Virus record (IMG/VR): IMGVR_UViG_3300033830_000018
Coordinates: 1 to 6,951 of that record
Length of the DNA stretch: 6,951 bases
Reading direction: 5' to 3' (one strand)
Shown here: in pieces, positions 1 to 4,913 of the stretch
Layout: every line of letters begins with the position of its first letter
Position numbering within the stretch: the stretch's first letter is position 1
The notes under the pieces: model-generated
What the model was told of the DNA's origin: nothing
The model's database searches: none
The model's input: the letters and a program-made list of their open reading frames with translations, nothing else
Made by a program: the position numbers and the translations under genes

Positions 1-180
1 CTGAAGTACTTGAAGACTAACACACATTCATTACGTTACGCACTAATCAGCTATCTCGCAAAAAACGCCGTAGACCCCGCAATTATTGCAAAGATAACTG
101 GGCATAAGAAACTAGACAGAATTATACAGTATACTCAAACAAAAGACGCCGTCGATATTTTGCGTAAGCTTTCTACCTAA
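1..180 (+). CDS. Tyrosine recombinase/integrase (XerC/D-like), C-terminal fragment; 5' part lies outside the window
   Basis: Not in the ORF track. Frame +1 translated by hand: LKYLKTNTHSLRYALISYLAKNAVDPAIIAKITGHKKLDRIIQYTQTKDAVDILRKLST*. It has the box II catalytic signature H-x-L-R ... G-H ... Y (HSLR, TGH, QY) with canonical spacing. Stop TAA at 178-180. Confidence 0.93.
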   Translation: MKYLKTNTHSLRYALISYLAKNAVDPAIIAKITGHKKLDRIIQYTQTKDAVDILRKLST

Positions 181-202: not shown

Positions 203-239
203 GGTATAACTCATAATTATATAATAGGTGAAAACACAT

Positions 240-434
240 ATGGTTGAAATAAAGTTAAGATGGAGGATAAAGTCAACGAAAAAGAATGGTAAGGTATACC
301 CTCTATATTATATATCAGTACCAGGTAAATCGGCTGTTTTTTTATTGCAATACGAACCATATTTAGACCCAGAAAGGCAAATAATCTTTTTCAGACCCAA
401 GCAGAACCAAAGCCAACAACCACAAAGTCAATAA
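240..434 (+). CDS. Small basic protein (64 aa), possible AbrB/SpoVT-like swapped-hairpin DNA-binding protein
   Basis: ORF track 228..434. ATG 240 is preferred because GGTGA (227-231) is a Shine-Dalgarno 8 nt upstream. The basic beta-rich N-terminus with KNGKVYPLYYISVP resembles the AbrB-type 'YxITIP' hairpin; Q/S-rich tail. The family call is by eye. Confidence 0.6.
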   Translation: MVEIKLRWRIKSTKKNGKVYPLYYISVPGKSAVFLLQYEPYLDPERQIIFFRPKQNQSQQPQSQ

Positions 435-463: not shown

Positions 464-1417
464 CTAAGCTAAGATAATCCTATTTAATATATAATTTAGT
501 TTCAGTCTCGGAAAGTCAGCTAAGTACCTTGGCGATATTTTACCTGACATTTCGTTGTACTGATATGCGATACTTAGCATGAAATTTGCCATGTCTAGTT
601 CTAATAAGCCTGGAGAATAGCTCTTGTCCCCGTAGTATCTCGAATAGATAGATATTGGGGATTCGTTTATAAGATCCGATATATTTTTGACAATATATTT
701 ATGCAAATCGAATATATTATTCAGGTTGCGTATTAATTCTTTATAACTTGCCTTATCCAAGGTGTACGCGTTATGAGATTTTAAGAAATTAAGGATGAAT
801 AACCCTAACCCCGTAGTCGTATACTTTCTCTTCTTCCCTTCATCGTTCGGGCTGATCTCACTGCTTAGACCCATTAGCAAAAGAGGGACAAGCCCGTTGC
901 GGAGATTTTCAACAGATAAATTATTGCAAGCGTCACCGCACACCTCCTTCGCAAACCTTAGGGCATCTTTTAATTCCGCGTTCAGCAGGGGGAGTTGAGA
1001 GTTGAAAATGTAAAGGTATTCACGCAAAGTCAATTTATTTATTGGGTTGTCTAGCTTCTCAGCTATTTTTAGAGATTTCATAGAGTCTGTTAATATTAAA
1101 AAGGAGAATATTGAGGCTTCCCTGACCCTGTAATATTTATCATCAATCAACTCAACTCCAGTAAATTCCGATATTGAATTAGCGTACTCGTCAGCCTTTT
1201 CCGTAAGCTTATCAAATACCTCTGGAAAACCCGACGCAGTCAGAGTTCTAATTTTTGCTGGCACGACAAAACCGTTTTTAGCTAATTCAATAACCTTAAG
1301 TGATGTTTTCTCAGCCTTGGTGCGTTTTGGACTCGTCCTGACGAGATCGACGAAGAATTCAAAGGAGTCGTTGACGATGTTTTTATTACCTTCTTCTTGA
1401 TAAAAATCCATAGCCAT
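464..1417 (-). CDS. Hypothetical protein (317 aa), predicted largely alpha-helical
   Basis: Long ORF with ATG at 1417. The minus-strand TATA-like TTTAAAAA (1447-1440) ends 23 nt upstream, consistent with a leaderless mRNA. No motif recognised. Confidence 0.85.
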   Translation of the reverse strand: MAMDFYQEEGNKNIVNDSFEFFVDLVRTSPKRTKAEKTSLKVIELAKNGFVVPAKIRTLTASGFPEVFDKLTEKADEYANSISEFTGVELIDDKYYRVREASIFSFLILTDSMKSLKIAEKLDNPINKLTLREYLYIFNSQLPLLNAELKDALRFAKEVCGDACNNLSVENLRNGLVPLLLMGLSSEISPNDEGKKRKYTTTGLGLFILNFLKSHNAYTLDKASYKELIRNLNNIFDLHKYIVKNISDLINESPISIYSRYYGDKSYSPGLLELDMANFMLSIAYQYNEMSGKISPRYLADFPRLKLNYILNRIILA

Positions 1418-1439
1418 ACTTTAATTTAGGGGAAACTCG

Positions 1440-1447
1440 TTTTTAAA
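1440..1447 (-). promoter_or_regulatory. TATA box for the 317-aa gene
   Basis: Minus strand reads TTTAAAAA at leaderless spacing from ATG 1417. Confidence 0.6.
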
Positions 1448-1454
1448 CTTAAAC

Positions 1455-1470
1455 AACAGCTGTTTTAGAG
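1455..1470. repeat. Palindromic motif copy 1 (AACAGCTGTTttagag)
   Basis: Perfect 10-bp palindrome at 1455-1464; 1455-1470 is identical to 1771-1786. Confidence 0.85.
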
Positions 1471-1485
1471 GTATCTAGCTCGTCA

Positions 1486-1521
1486 TTTTCAGTCTAACTA
1501 GTTGGGCAGAAAATTTAAATA
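1486..1521 (+). promoter_or_regulatory. Conserved promoter module copy 1: imperfect inverted repeat + BRE (GCAGAAAA) + TATA (TTTAAATA 1514-1521)
   Basis: ttttc-agtc-taac-ta-gttg-ggca-gaaaa-tttaaata. TATA ends 24 nt before ATG 1545 (leaderless). Aligns without gaps to 1810-1845 and 2316-2351. Confidence 0.85.
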
Positions 1522-1544
1522 TCAGTCCTAACAATAGTTAAATA

Positions 1545-1736
1545 ATGACGCCCCAAGAAGTAGTAAAGGAAGAAATCATAAAAATGTTAGAAAAGGACTT
1601 CGACCAGCTACAAAAACTTATTGATTATATTGCAAAGACAAAAAATTTAGATTTAGACAGGAAAAAGGTTGGCGAAGCTTATTTTTTAGCCCAGAAAATT
1701 GACATGGAGTTATATAGATTAATTCTCTTGATCTAA
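1545..1736 (+). CDS. Small helical hypothetical protein (63 aa)
   Basis: ORF with its own consensus promoter at leaderless spacing and a downstream T-tract; amphipathic charged helices. Confidence 0.85.
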   Translation: MTPQEVVKEEIIKMLEKDFDQLQKLIDYIAKTKNLDLDRKKVGEAYFLAQKIDMELYRLILLI

Positions 1737-1747
1737 AAACTAACCCG

Positions 1748-1764
1748 TTTTTTATTTACTTTTT
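1748..1764 (+). terminator. Oligo-T terminator
   Basis: ttttttatttactttttt-like tract starting 12 nt after the stop; near-identical tract at 2236-2253. Confidence 0.7.
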
Positions 1765-1786
1765 CTCTCAAACAGCTGTTTTAGAG
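1765..1786. repeat. Palindromic motif copy 2 (CTCTCAAACAGCTGTTTTAGAG)
   Basis: 22-bp inverted repeat with a single mismatched pair, centre CAGCTG at 1773-1778. Confidence 0.9.
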
Positions 1787-1809
1787 TTGTTTCGCCGTAC
1801 CCAGCGTCC

Positions 1810-1845
1810 TTTTCTGCCTAACCTATTGGGCAGAAACTTTATATA
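1810..1845 (+). promoter_or_regulatory. Conserved promoter module copy 2 (TATA TTTATATA 1838-1845)
   Basis: ttttc-tgcc-taac-ct-attg-ggca-gaaac-tttatata. TTTCTGCC (1811-1818) and GGCAGAAA (1829-1836) form a perfect 8-bp inverted pair. Confidence 0.85.
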
Positions 1846-1875
1846 TTTCCAAACGAATATTATAATGGCGAAAAT

Positions 1876-2235
1876 ATGAGAACTCAAAAGGCTCAAAAGG
1901 GAAATAGAAGTCAAGAAGAAAACAAATTGTATTTTTGCAACCTTTGTGGTTTTATTGCAGAAAGTTATGAAGAACTTGATATGCATTATACGTTTGAACA
2001 CGACCCAGACCCCGATCTTGGTTATGAATTAGAAGTGATGTGGGAAAACAAAAAGAAAAAGAAGAAAGCAAAAGGTTTGAAGGGAAAGGCATTTGAACAG
2101 CTAGAATTATTAATAAACGGTGAGGATTACAAAAACGAGTATGTCGGATGGTGCCATATTCCTTACGAAATAATAACAAGGAAGAAAGGCAACAGATACG
2201 TAATTAAGGTCGTTCCAGGAGTTGAAATTTGTTAA
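1876..2235 (+). CDS. C2H2 zinc-finger protein (119 aa)
   Basis: C-x2-C-x12-H-x4-H motif (YFCNLCGFIAESYEELDMHYTFEH), then acidic DPDPD and a poly-Lys tract; has its own promoter and terminator. Confidence 0.85.
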   Translation: MRTQKAQKGNRSQEENKLYFCNLCGFIAESYEELDMHYTFEHDPDPDLGYELEVMWENKKKKKKAKGLKGKAFEQLELLINGEDYKNEYVGWCHIPYEIITRKKGNRYVIKVVPGVEIC

Positions 2236-2253
2236 TTTTTTTATTTATTTCTT
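2236..2253 (+). terminator. Oligo-T terminator
   Basis: tttttttatttatttctt immediately after TAA 2235. Confidence 0.7.
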
Positions 2254-2255
2254 CT

Positions 2256-2273
2256 CTCAAACAGCTGTTTGAG
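2256..2273. repeat. Palindromic motif copy 3 (CTCAAACAGCTGTTTGAG, perfect 18 bp)
   Basis: Perfect 18-bp palindrome read directly; centre CAGCTG at 2262-2267. Confidence 0.92.
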
Positions 2274-2315
2274 GTCTCTTTCTTTCCTCCTCTCCACCGA
2301 CCGCTCCAACTCCGT

Positions 2316-2351
2316 TTTTCCTCCTAACTGGTTATGCAGAAAATTTAAATA
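2316..2351 (+). promoter_or_regulatory. Conserved promoter module copy 3 (TATA TTTAAATA 2344-2351)
   Basis: ttttc-ctcc-taac-tg-gtta-tgca-gaaaa-tttaaata. GCAGAAAATTTAAATATC is identical to copy 1. Confidence 0.85.
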
Positions 2352-2382
2352 TCTGAGTTAGCACATATATAATTGATCAAAT

Positions 2383-2961
2383 ATGTCCTCTCCACAAGTT
2401 AAGTCAAGCCCCCAACCACAAGTCAAAACAAATCCTAATTCTATAAATCAAACAAATGCTAGTCAAATAACCTGGGAGACCATCTTAAGGTCTCCCAGGA
2501 TTACCAAGGAACATGTAGAGTATGCAATTAACAATATTGATCAAGCTCCATTACTGCCCCATGAATTTGTTTACAGTCAAGTCGCTACTGATGTCAAAAT
2601 CTCCTACCCCCGCTCTATCGCAATTAGTGGTGTAGGTGGTATAATTGGTGCAGTACTTTCAATAAAACACACCGATAACATATCTTATTTCGTAACTACT
2701 GAGGAAGTTATTAATGCAACCGAGAATTCACCACTGTTTCTCGCAAAGTTCTCGTTAGAAAAACTAAGTAAAATCTATCAAAATACTGAGGTTATCATCC
2801 TGAAACTGAATGAATTTGAGAAAATTAAGTTGTTGCTAAGTCAAGGAGGAGTCTATATTTCTGGTTTGCCATATGAGATTACTATTCAGATAGCACAACT
2901 AGCGGGGTTTGGTAGGCTTTGGCACTTTTCACCAATTCAGCAAAAATTCTTTGTATTCTGA
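2383..2961 (+). CDS. Hypothetical protein (192 aa), possibly a degenerate P-loop/AAA+ (DnaC/IstB-like) fold
   Basis: ORF with its own promoter. S/P/Q/N-rich N-terminus followed by an alpha/beta pattern. The fold assignment is inference (see findings). Confidence 0.8.
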   Translation: MSSPQVKSSPQPQVKTNPNSINQTNASQITWETILRSPRITKEHVEYAINNIDQAPLLPHEFVYSQVATDVKISYPRSIAISGVGGIIGAVLSIKHTDNISYFVTTEEVINATENSPLFLAKFSLEKLSKIYQNTEVIILKLNEFEKIKLLLSQGGVYISGLPYEITIQIAQLAGFGRLWHFSPIQQKFFVF

Positions 2962-2976
2962 GTATTCTGATTCTGA
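2953..2976 (+). repeat. Short tandem repeat GTATTCTGA x2 + TTCTGA
   Basis: gtattctga-gtattctga-ttctga spans the stop codon of the 192-aa gene and runs into the next ribosome site. Confidence 0.75.
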
Positions 2977-2989
2977 GGTGGCGACAAAA

Positions 2990-3748
2990 ATGACCGAATT
3001 TGAACTTGAGATAAAAAAGTTTAGATGGTTAATTTCCCAGGGTTATATAACACCACAAGAACTGGCATTTTACTCCAACTTTTACGATATCCAGATGACC
3101 AGTACTGTGAATTTTCAAGGATATGAGATATTGACTCCATTGTTTGTGTTGGCGAGACCAAGCAAGTTTGACCAAGTAAAAAGAGAACTGCCTCAGGCAG
3201 AAATAGCAGATCCATATAGCAAAAAGTTCCCATTAATTTCATTGATAAGTCTAGAAAAATTCATTAACACTCTAGTTAATCTCAAAATACCATACTACTT
3301 CTTCTCAGTGTGGTTGCATAGATCGTATAATGATATTCCAGAATCAGGTCAATTATTACTGAGTAAGCTCATTAATATGGCGAATTCTTCCTACAAATAT
3401 GTTATAAAAAGTTATAACATCCCTTCATCATCTTCAGAAGAACCAGCATTACCAACGGATCTAGAGAAAATAATATGTCATTTCAGGAAAATGTTGGGTA
3501 ATAAGGATAACTGCGACGATAATGACTGGTGGAAGTATAATTTGTGGAACAAATCTAGTGTAACTGGTACTACAACTGCAAATAGTACAACAACCATCGG
3601 AAGGAAAGAAATAGAGAAGTTAGCGTTGAAATACAATGTATCACCAATTTGTTTACAGTACGTTATAATGTATAACAAAAACCCGTGTCACCTTTCCCCA
3701 TTTCTTCTGCTCCAAATCAAATCAGACCTCTCTTCTTCCTCTTCATAA
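2990..3748 (+). CDS. Hypothetical protein (252 aa)
   Basis: ORF track 2909..3748. The in-frame ATG at 2990 is preferred because GAGGTG (2975-2980) precedes it and it avoids overlap with the upstream gene. Ser and Thr low-complexity linkers separate small Cys/His-containing C-terminal segments. Confidence 0.85.
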   Translation: MTEFELEIKKFRWLISQGYITPQELAFYSNFYDIQMTSTVNFQGYEILTPLFVLARPSKFDQVKRELPQAEIADPYSKKFPLISLISLEKFINTLVNLKIPYYFFSVWLHRSYNDIPESGQLLLSKLINMANSSYKYVIKSYNIPSSSSEEPALPTDLEKIICHFRKMLGNKDNCDDNDWWKYNLWNKSSVTGTTTANSTTTIGRKEIEKLALKYNVSPICLQYVIMYNKNPCHLSPFLLLQIKSDLSSSSS

Positions 3749-3771
3749 TTTTTTCCTCTCTTCCTCTCCTT
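3749..3771 (+). terminator. Oligo-T/pyrimidine terminator between convergent genes
   Basis: ttttttcctctcttcctctcctt directly after TAA 3748. Confidence 0.6.
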
Positions 3772-3772
3772 A

Positions 3773-4294
3773 TCACAGGGTATTCGTATTCTCCTTTCTC
3801 TCTCTTTTCGCTATCTTTTTTGCATCTATTACTTCTATTATTCCCTCTTCCTCCAGATATTCTAGCACTGCGTCGCTATCATCTATCACTATTACCTTAT
3901 CTTGGTCGTATTTTTCCATTAGCTCCTTTACGATAATTCTCTTAAACTCATGGTCTTTTCTGTAGTCCTTCTCACCTCTCAGCACGACCTCATTCGGCTC
4001 TATCCCTATCTCTGACAGCTGTTTGAGAGTTTCCTTACGTTGTTTTTCCGAACGACCGCTGACTACTGCTATCACTTCTGGCTTTTCCTCCTCAATTAAT
4101 CGTTTGACGAACCTGATAACTTCCCACTTAGGTTCGTCCAGGTTCATGAACCTCGGTGATTGATAACATTCCCAAAACACACGGTCGGGTGTCCAAGATA
4201 ATGTTTTCTTGTCTCCTCTGGATATCTTCTCGCATTCGTACCACCTAGCAGAAGTATCGAAAAGCGTGCCGTCCAAATCTAGGATTAGCATCAT
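3773..4294 (-). CDS. HAD-superfamily phosphatase, similar to the 3'-phosphatase domain of T4 polynucleotide kinase/phosphatase (PseT)
   Basis: All four HAD motifs are present: I LILDLDGTL, II VVSGR, III RKDHEFK, IV VIDDSD. SGR, R-K-D-x3-K and DD match the PNKP phosphatase pattern. ATGA overlap with the upstream gene and a GGTGGAGG ribosome site. Confidence 0.9.
   Translation of the reverse strand: MMLILDLDGTLFDTSARWYECEKISRGDKKTLSWTPDRVFWECYQSPRFMNLDEPKWEVIRFVKRLIEEEKPEVIAVVSGRSEKQRKETLKQLSEIGIEPNEVVLRGEKDYRKDHEFKRIIVKELMEKYDQDKVIVIDDSDAVLEYLEEEGIIEVIDAKKIAKRERKENTNTL
4010..4029 (-). repeat. Palindromic motif copy 4, intragenic (minus strand CTCTCAAACAGCTGTCAGAG)
   Basis: 15-nt exact match (CTCTCAAACAGCTGT) to copies 2 and 3; lies inside the HAD gene, coding TLKQLSE. 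Confidence 0.65.
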
Positions 4295-4851
4295 TTTCCT
4301 CCACCTTGTTGTTTAAAACCTAGTATTGTTATCTCTCCATTCACTTCTTTGAAGTCTAACTCCTTAGCTTTCCCCTCGCGGTTATATACGAGCCACAATA
4401 CTTCGGCACCGTTTTCGTCTTTCCCCCATTTTAGTTTGCTACATTTCCCATCAAATTTAGTATAAAAGTAGTTTATCGCTTCCTGGTCATTTTTTTCTTC
4501 TTGCAGTTTGTCTAACGTAGCTGGGTCAAACGGTTGATCAAATAGGTAGATCTTCTTATTACCTTTTCCGTCATCAAAAACGAAATATATCCCGAATTTG
4601 AACCCGTTAAGGTTTGAAGTTGCCATTAGGTCGCGATGTTTCCTGATAAATTCGTTATCCGCAACAGCAGAAATATAAAGAGTGTCATGTCCGTCACCTA
4701 TGCCTATACATAATAAGTTTGCATGTGCGGGTTTGTCGGCTTTTACGTAGAAAGCGACGTATGTTACAGCAATGGTTGGTGTAGTTTTGGGTATGTACCC
4801 GTGGACACGCACTATGAAAAACTTATCTATGCTGATTGACGAGCTTACCAT
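4291..4851 (-). CDS. Hypothetical beta-rich protein (186 aa)
   Basis: ORF with TATA TTTTTAAA (4882-4875, minus strand) ending 24 nt before ATG 4851; translationally coupled to the HAD gene. Confidence 0.85.
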   Translation of the reverse strand: MVSSSISIDKFFIVRVHGYIPKTTPTIAVTYVAFYVKADKPAHANLLCIGIGDGHDTLYISAVADNEFIRKHRDLMATSNLNGFKFGIYFVFDDGKGNKKIYLFDQPFDPATLDKLQEEKNDQEAINYFYTKFDGKCSKLKWGKDENGAEVLWLVYNREGKAKELDFKEVNGEITILGFKQQGGGK

Positions 4852-4895: not shown

Positions 4896-4913
4896 CTCAA
4901 ACATATGTTTGAG
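4896..4913. repeat. Palindromic motif copy 5 (CTCAAACATATGTTTGAG, perfect 18 bp)
   Basis: Same arms as copy 3 with the central GC replaced by TA; sits between divergent promoters. Confidence 0.9.

Follow-up and report, generated by a model that had tools for sequence, protein, structure and literature searches.

The 6951-nt stretch of DNA analysed here (the window) is the complete IMG/VR contig IMGVR_UViG_3300033830_000018 and carries an array of small genes separated by repeats that combine transcription signals with a palindrome. We consider it probable that these repeats are composite regulatory modules between which gene cassettes are shuffled by homologous recombination, in a manner resembling the promoter early stem-loop (PeSL) elements of T4-type phages, and that their palindrome additionally serves as a genome-wide operator. 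Mobility of the cassettes is strongly supported by sequence comparison with relatives: among 18 loci that contain both anchor genes of the array, 15 different arrays can be told apart, which comprise zero to four units each and draw on at least ten cargo families. To our knowledge, the acquisition and exchange of the many ORFan genes of archaeal viruses is poorly understood. Our analysis suggests that a lineage of large spindle-shaped viruses keeps accessory genes in standard promoter-terminator ‘slots’, that hot-spring populations hold many slot combinations and that this organisation parallels T4-type PeSL cassettes while being built from archaeal transcription signals.

The window belongs to an SMV4-like bicaudavirus of the Sulfolobales. 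SMV4 (Sulfolobus monocaudavirus) is its closest match with 84% identity over 89% of the window length; weaker matches were obtained with SMV3 and SMV1, and all of these viruses are Bicaudaviridae. A plasmid origin was considered and rejected, as no match was found in PLSDB, and a search of the window for known RNA families, tRNAs or att clues found none. For comparison of the surroundings of the virion gene, we used 47 metagenome loci and several IMG/VR loci. Loci and contigs of relatives are designated by L numbers, with L003 and L005 representing SMV1, L004 SMV4, L006 SMV3, L039 positions 1-50000 of ATV (Acidianus two-tailed virus) and L040 ATSV (Acidianus tailed spindle virus).

Three composite modules in the window

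Three consecutive intergenic regions share one architecture, as the original prediction had proposed, and a repeat search recovered the same families (D1, 42 nt, three copies; D2, 20 nt, four copies; D5, 46 nt, T-tract plus palindrome, 85% identity). The sequence AACAGCTGTT matches exactly at 1455-1464, 1771-1780 and 2260-2269, with 0.01 matches expected from 200 shuffles, and the predicted distances of 316 and 489 bp between palindrome centres were confirmed. A degenerate 36-nt block, the promoter module (MOD), is present without a single mismatch at 1486-1521, 1810-1845 and 2316-2351 (0.00 matches expected); even with 3 mismatches allowed, it has no other match in the window. Palindrome copies 2 and 3 extend to the 18-bp sequence CTCAAACAGCTGTTTGAG, hereafter PAL, and copy 1 consists of a 10-12-nt core and the right flank only. 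The features of the array are as follows.

1449-1470, no strand: PAL1, core AACAGCTGTT with a TTTAGAG flank; SMV4 homology ends at 1470, SMV3 homology resumes at 1449
1486-1521, plus strand: MOD1, dyad TTTTC-N3-CTAAC-N2-GTTGG-N3-GAAAA overlapping the transcription factor B recognition element (BRE), then TATA box TTTAAATA; 0 mismatches
1545-1736, plus strand: cargo gene F7, 63 aa, SSV1 D-63 family (PF20940, 5.6e-16)
1742-1766, plus strand: terminator arm (CCCGTTTTTTATTTACTTTTTCT) of the F7 cassette
1767-1784, no strand: PAL2 (CTCAAACAGCTGTTTTAG)
1810-1845, plus strand: MOD2, TATA box TTTATATA, a variant that accompanies F4 cargo in all relatives
1876-2235, plus strand: cargo gene F4, 119 aa, C2H2-type zinc-finger motif (weak zf-C2H2 matches, 1.6e-03; phrog_18124)
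2236-2255, plus strand: terminator arm of the F4 cassette, part of repeat D5
2256-2273, no strand: PAL3, perfect CTCAAACAGCTGTTTGAG; SMV4 homology resumes exactly at 2256
2316-2351, plus strand: MOD3, predicted promoter upstream of the two virion-protein genes, with 100% identity in many relatives
2383-2961, plus strand: F0, virion structural protein (phrog_17386, 2.1e-83), right array anchor
2990-3748, plus strand: F1, second virion structural protein (phrog_16306, 1.9e-104)

Some details of the predicted architecture need correcting. Terminators abut the palindromes at copies 2 and 3, as claimed (T-runs at 1750-1766 and 2236-2255), and copy 1 is located in a divergent promoter region, not behind a terminator. 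One gene per cassette applies to F7 and F4, while the third unit holds two genes, F0 and F1, behind the single promoter module MOD3. The longest open reading frame (ORF) of F1 would start at a TTG (2909) and thus overlap the final part of F0; a start at the ATG at 2990 agrees better with the homologues, and the true start is uncertain.

In Sulfolobales promoters, a purine-rich BRE precedes an A/T-rich 8-mer TATA box, and the mRNA, which is leaderless or has a short leader, starts about 25 nt further downstream. MOD conforms to this pattern. It contains a 28-bp dyad whose right arm is a purine-rich BRE (GCAGAAAA) directly abutting the TTTAWATA box. From the end of the TATA box to the ATG, the distance is 23-31 nt in the window (23 nt for MOD1, with its ATG at 1545) and has a median of 25 nt in 44 cassettes. 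Judged by these consensus sequences, MOD would act as promoter and the T-rich arm as terminator. The original prediction also included a hairpin. The 28-bp dyad TTTTC-N3-CTAAC-N2-GTTRG-N3-GAAAA behind that claim exists, but a consistent fold does not: its folding energy at 37 °C amounts to -13.8, -7.9 and -2.8 kcal/mol in the three copies, and the dyad is mostly unfolded at 78 °C. A function as hairpin was rejected, since the copies do not fold consistently and hardly any folding is left at 78 °C.

Cassette turnover and crossover points among relatives

The array is flanked on its left side by three genes.

10-180, plus strand: final 56 codons of the tyrosine integrase gene, i.e. its 3' end (Pfam Phage_integrase, 1.3e-05; phrog_9208 integrase, 1.8e-29)
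240-434, plus strand: F2, conserved 64-aa gene, left array anchor (phrog_18276, function unknown)
464-1417, minus strand: F6, 317-aa ORFan, no Pfam or PHROG family

The integrase ORF ends 1275 bp before palindrome 1, in agreement with the recombinase predicted about 1.3 kb upstream, and the fragment aligns with the 242-aa integrases of SMV1, SMV3 and SMV4. F2 adjoins the integrase in these three viruses and in many contigs, and the array always begins just downstream of the two genes. F6 behaves as a presence/absence unit with its right end abutting palindrome 1; it is absent in SMV3 and L010 and split in SMV4. On the right side, homologues of F0 carry the annotation of a virion structural protein in SMV3, SMV4 and ATV.

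Between the anchors, relatives follow the grammar (MOD - gene - terminator arm - PAL)n - MOD - F0. A MOD was found within 55 nt upstream of 44 of the 51 assessable plus-strand cassette ORFs and a PAL within 90 nt after the stop codon of 46 of 53 cassette ORFs (median distance 32 nt), which bears out the idea of a self-contained expression cassette per unit; runs of at least five T residues follow 63 of 75 ORFs. The cargo genes are mostly ORFans and their family maps differ among the window, SMV1, SMV3, SMV4 and the contigs. SMV3 contains F7-F4 and lacks F6, while SMV4 harbours F6 and, between MOD1 and PAL3, the unrelated F10 in place of F7 and F4; homology between the window and SMV4 is interrupted accordingly from 1470 to exactly 2256. 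Gene order is also permuted (F10-F4 in L078 versus F4-F10 in L080), and L052 holds an empty unit in which promoter and terminator enclose an 8-codon remnant. Together with the 15 arrays in 18 anchored loci, permutation and empty unit strongly support the view that cargo is gained, lost, replaced and reordered among relatives. A second candidate for an empty unit, in L071, was discarded: the slot is occupied by an AbrB/SpoVT-like ORF on the minus strand (L071:600-845) that starts with GTG and replaces most of F10, of which the promoter and first codons remain.

Where do these changes break? Aligning the relatives gave a mixed answer to the prediction that gains and losses break at the palindrome: several clean junctions are located in PAL or its arms, others inside genes. 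L010 lacks exactly the PAL1-to-PAL2 unit of SMV3 and retains one chimeric module. The window itself matches L011 with 98-100% identity over F6 and F7 as far as 1792, while its identity to L010 and L084 is 99-100% starting at 1771/1733 and running through F4; F4 of L011 is only 69% identical to that of the window, and F7 of L084 only 84%. The change from L011-like to L010/L084-like sequence lies in 1733-1792, and this change of partner identity thus places the switch in the shared segment of terminator arm and PAL2. An F4 allele (1876-2189) that is 100% identical in L010, L046, L075, L076 and L084 is found behind five different upstream neighbours, with boundaries within approximately 20 nt of PAL, and an identical copy of the F7 protein occurs on 12 contigs. 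The isolate genomes alone show one such junction inside a PAL: on its left side, SMV4 agrees with SMV1, and on its right side with SMV3. The insertion of gene F8 in L011 begins right after PAL3.

Comparison of 81 PAL contexts revealed that a left arm of approximately 30 nt, AACCCGTTTTTTATTTACTTCTTCTCTC, is common to unrelated cargo genes (F7, F10, F14, N4, N6 and N8), that the right flank of PAL follows the downstream unit and that arm variants are shuffled relative to the cargo. The TATA variant is cargo-specific, with TTTAAATA accompanying F7 and TTTATATA accompanying F4 and F10; gene and promoter therefore move together. Crossovers are distributed over terminator arm, PAL and spacer, i.e. 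over a module of about 60-130 nt, and some are located inside genes. The spacer between PAL2 and MOD2 also exists in two lengths that differ by 52-66 nt (window ~1805 compared with L010:1905-1975 and L002:5935-6005), as a result of an indel; the long form contains CCAGCCCTCGACCTG, which recurs in other spacers, e.g. upstream of F10 in SMV4.

Palindrome and promoter dyad across the virus genomes

Allowing up to 3 mismatches, PAL occurs 22 times in SMV4, 19 times in SMV1 and 22 times in SMV3, as compared to 0.00-0.05 times in dinucleotide shuffles, and the perfect 12-mers AAACAGCTGTTT and AAACATATGTTT are present in 12-14 and 8-11 copies per genome, respectively. In SMV4, 17 of the 22 copies are located in annotated intergenic DNA, which accounts for 12% of the genome. 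Twelve orthologous PAL sets of SMV1, SMV3 and SMV4 are 94% identical within PAL versus 43-63% in the flanking 15-nt blocks, and copies are also common in the conserved structural module of the SMV genomes. The position of PAL relative to the promoter varies. The TATA box is contained in the palindrome in the recurrent form TTTAAACAGCTGTTTGAG and likewise in the form TTTAAACAGCTG; further copies are located 8-14 nt upstream of core-gene start codons, for example that of the major head protein, and others overlie the BRE, lie between convergent genes or precede a promoter by 27-110 nt. Since PAL is present in 19-22 copies per genome, forms conserved islands and in many cases lies on core-gene TATA boxes, it looks like a virus-wide operator, and from this pattern we infer that it is the binding site of a dimeric, probably virus-encoded regulator.

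A host operator was considered as well and rejected: the exact 18-mer is absent from all Sulfolobales genomes scanned in a one-genome-per-species collection, and its 34 exact matches are all from unrelated organisms, approximately the number expected by chance. Within IMG/VR, the 18-mer is multi-copy on SMV-like contigs only. The PAL family is also absent from the scanned parts of ATV and ATSV. ATV (1-50000) contains three copies of a related palindrome, GAACAGCTGTTC, which may be a diverged counterpart of PAL. In SMV1 (L005), an IS200/605 element annotated at 25272-27062 extends at its end into the first bases of a PAL of the CATATG type (27059-27076), which may have served as insertion target. 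A duplicated segment with the paralogues gp50 and gp53 was observed in the second variable region of SMV4 (L004 40860-41000 and 42493-42640), each copy having a PAL with identical flanks over ~70 nt on both sides, as left by segmental duplication.

MOD has a narrower distribution. Approximately 30 copies were found in the SMV-like set, three to seven per genome, all confined to two variable regions, the second of which is filled by the same PAL/MOD grammar; PAL is usually located 27-100 nt upstream of MOD. MOD would define a smaller set of co-regulated accessory genes. The module also precedes the CopG-like gene of SMV4 gp58 (L004 46017-46052) and SMV3 gp63 (L006 49774-49809), and SMV1 retains a MOD promoter (41998-42033) with no annotated gene behind it. 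SMV3 gp63 is a functional homologue of the cell-cycle regulator aCcr1 and blocks host cell division (PMC9976878). The aCcr1-box, a 9-bp motif between TATA box and start codon on Sulfolobales promoters (PMC9976878), resembles PAL and MOD in being a short palindromic site on or beside BRE/TATA. It was rejected as identity of either element, as the published motif differs in sequence and neither PAL nor MOD matches it; gp63 itself has a predicted MOD promoter.

F2, the left anchor, has its start codon within a PAL-like sequence (AAACAGATGGTT) in several relatives, about 12 nt after a TATA-like run (window 228-245; L011:120-140; L052:1990-2010), and because of this placement, the sequence suggests that F2 itself is PAL-controlled. 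The search for hints on F2 as PAL-binding protein yielded no Pfam family and no sequence match to any solved structure. Its AlphaFold model (predicted local distance difference test score of 73.5) comprises two beta-hairpins around a helix, for which Foldseek found no match below E = 1 among PDB structures.

Two regulatory elements were thus newly noticed: the genome-wide 18-bp palindrome and the promoter-embedded dyad, the latter preceding, among others, the viral homologue of aCcr1. In the searchable literature, we found no earlier description of either, although subscription papers on SMV1 and ATV outside it may mention them. PAL and MOD may be useful as portable expression parts for Sulfolobales genetics.

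Proposed exchange between modules and alternative readings

How could the modules work? Their layout comprises, in this order, a predicted oligo-T terminator arm of approximately 30 nt, the 18-bp PAL (core AAACAGCTGTTT), a variable spacer and MOD. By sequence, each small accessory gene lies between a predicted promoter and a predicted terminator of its own and therefore represents a monocistronic plug-in expression unit. PAL would most likely bind a virus-encoded dimeric regulator; located over a TATA box or start site, it would then cause repression, while behind a terminator it would act as roadblock or insulator. Because otherwise unrelated genes are separated by modules with ~60-130 nt of conserved sequence, these constitute portable homology. 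Recombination between modules, either of co-infecting genomes or within one genome, would delete, insert, replace and reorder cassettes. This outcome is evident from the comparison of relatives, and for the pathway, we infer homologous recombination from the sequences. It fits with the spread of crossovers, with those located inside homologous genes and with homology that in every case reaches past PAL on one side or both. Of the two routes of shuffling considered in the original prediction, the spread of crossovers over the module and within genes favours the homologous one. The neighbouring integrase probably serves the virus solely as its chromosomal integrase.

The closest known system is found in T4-type phages, whose PeSL elements are mobile regulatory cassettes (Arbiol et al. 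2010, PMC2839356; Comeau et al. 2014, PMC4122927). In both cases, a composite motif of promoter and terminator (predicted here), conserved over about 100 bp, is intergenic and repeated. PeSL motifs are concentrated in hyperplastic regions, where they flank small ORFan genes; here, MOD is limited to the two variable regions with their mostly ORFan cargo, and PAL is also common among the conserved structural genes. In both systems, the motifs delimit indels and replacements between relatives; exceptions here are the SMV1 deletion described below, the right end of the F8 insertion and the intragenic ends of some tracts. A gene enclosed by two motifs in one genome corresponds to one chimeric motif in another, here in SMV3 versus L010, and the empty unit of L052 as well as the unit loss of L010 are the products expected of mini-circles, which arise from PeSL by exchange between neighbouring motifs. 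In contrast to the sigma-70 promoter and G+C stem-loop of PeSL, the module described here relies on BRE/TATA and oligo-T, its promoter carries a predicted dyad operator of its own, and its short palindrome forms no stable hairpin at growth temperature and recurs genome-wide at core-gene promoters. By this comparison, the window feature is an archaeal-virus analogue of PeSL and not a member, since its signals are archaeal, its palindrome is unstable as hairpin, PAL would serve genome-wide regulation and there is no sequence homology.

Operators that are scattered in a comparable way exist in mycobacteriophages of the L5 type, whose stoperators provide many repressor sites in short intergenic spaces. 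Like PAL, they are operator-like sites in approximately 20-30 copies per genome, some over promoters and others between genes after terminators; unlike the asymmetric stoperators with their single orientation to transcription, PAL is symmetric and shows no orientation bias.

Several observations weigh against shuffling by recombination between modules. Besides the junctions at PAL, other near-identical tracts end inside F4, F0 and F1, and the right end of the F8 insertion is located ~75 nt beyond a PAL. SMV1 lacks 4.35 kb corresponding to window 490-4843 (from F6 to a 186-aa ORF; compared with L003:7947-8112), including F0 and F1. At the margins, 26 nt from the 3' end of F6 and the start codon of the 186-aa ORF are still present in SMV1, so that this deletion, which ends in coding DNA and not at PAL, is illegitimate. 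Intergenic regions of SMV4 that contain breaks are not significantly enriched in PAL (10 of 23 versus 7 of 31; odds ratio 2.6, one-sided Fisher p = 0.09). Alignments would moreover stop at PAL regardless of the mechanism, because many intergenic regions have no other conserved island. The diversity of arrays stems mostly from short-read metagenome contigs, in which repeats of 60-130 nt could yield chimeric assemblies; differences between the isolates SMV1, SMV3 and SMV4 and arrangements that were seen in several samples reduce both concerns without removing them. In a few comparisons (F2|F4 in L046; the chimeric flank in L050), finally, the shared segment is only the 10-12-nt core, a length that is small for homologous recombination and also compatible with a site-specific event.

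From these observations, one could argue that the modules are regulatory signals and nothing else, with turnover caused by generic recombination anywhere and junctions appearing there only as conserved DNA. We regard this as unlikely, albeit as the most serious competitor. The non-significant enrichment test, the illegitimate deletion in SMV1, the F8 insertion ending past a PAL and the tracts ending inside genes all fit such a scenario. Evidence against it comes from a 5' module and a 30-nt 3' arm that are both common to unrelated cargo genes, from the exact loss of one PAL-to-PAL unit, from order permutation and empty unit, from one identical F4 allele with five upstream neighbours and boundaries within ~20 nt of PAL, and from the three-way junction inside PAL among isolate genomes. 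A co-regulated set of genes without any mobility, the conservative alternative of the original prediction, is insufficient, as cassettes are gained, lost and reordered with junctions at the palindrome.

A second scenario resembles an integron: PAL would be an active recombination site at which the adjacent tyrosine recombinase or another, dedicated PAL-binding protein of the virus cuts and joins, so that promoter-bearing cassettes are excised as circles and inserted site-specifically. If true, this would be the first integron-like gene-capture system of an archaeal virus, acting genome-wide as well as on the array. As in integrons, single-gene units, each ending in a palindromic element, are located beside a tyrosine recombinase and vary in content and order, and the position of the array directly downstream of integrase and F2 is invariable. 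A perfect AAACAGCTGTTT is furthermore found inside the 242-aa integrase ORF of SMV1 (L003:7239-7256), SMV3, SMV4 and L010 as well as in the integrase ORF of ATSV (L040:40981-40998), and integrases of the SSV type carry attP inside their own gene. The intragenic copy, however, encodes the conserved residues YKQLFD and persists even in ATSV, which lacks the genome-wide PAL family; protein constraint may thus explain it. Split integrase genes, a sign of integration at this site, were not found among 14 IMG/VR loci.

The class of integrons fails on three of its defining features, and this reading is therefore unsupported. Integron cassettes are promoterless and depend on the common Pc promoter, whereas an own BRE/TATA module is present in 44 of 51 assessable cassettes and in all three cassettes of the window. 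The attC site is an imperfect palindrome of 57-141 nt that folds as single strand, as opposed to the 18-bp, near-perfect PAL, which shows no covariation and whose short hairpin melts at 78 °C. Integron sites (attI and attC) are confined to the array; the 19-22 PAL copies are distributed across each SMV genome, some on core-gene promoters far from the integrase, and the second variable region follows the same PAL/MOD grammar. In addition, crossover points are not fixed but spread over arm, PAL and spacer and extend into genes, the SMV1 deletion ends in coding DNA, and the recombinase is a bicaudavirus integrase of 242 aa. We retain site-specific movement at PAL as an improbable option, because a few junctions share the core only and the integrase ORF contains the 12-mer.

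It is even less probable that PAL acts as nucleic-acid structure, i.e. as RNA or DNA hairpin for termination or processing, instead of being bound by a protein. PAL does follow T-runs at a median of 32 nt after stop codons, and its centre varies (CAGCTG, CATATG or CATCTG) while the arms are kept, as in a stem with loop. Yet, outer stem positions change one-sidedly and without compensation, the hairpin is predicted to retain 0 to -1.6 kcal/mol at 78 °C, and the many copies upstream of or on TATA boxes would not be transcribed from that promoter. Archaeal termination, besides, requires oligo-T alone. Least likely of all is a miniature inverted-repeat transposable element (MITE) spreading through intergenic regions as small non-autonomous unit: the module is multi-copy, intergenic and about 100 nt long, and SMV1 carries annotated SMN2 MITEs and an IS200/605 element, but the fixed length, terminal inverted repeats and target-site duplications of a MITE were not seen, the PAL-MOD spacer varies from 27 to 100 nt, PAL and MOD are also found apart, and orthologous PALs are stable across SMV1, SMV3 and SMV4.

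To the right of the array, the window continues with further conserved genes, and two additional palindromes were identified there, both outside the range covered by the original prediction.

3773-4294, minus strand: HAD phosphatase/PNK gene, followed further right by the conserved genes
4010-4027, no strand: PAL-like copy with 2 mismatches inside the HAD phosphatase/PNK gene
4896-4913, no strand: PAL, CATATG variant, in the divergent intergenic region between a 186-aa and a 95-aa ORF

The copy at 4010-4027 encodes LKQLSE and is kept in SMV3, SMV4, L013, L014 and L037, while the PAL at 4896-4913 has orthologous copies in SMV1, SMV3 and SMV4.

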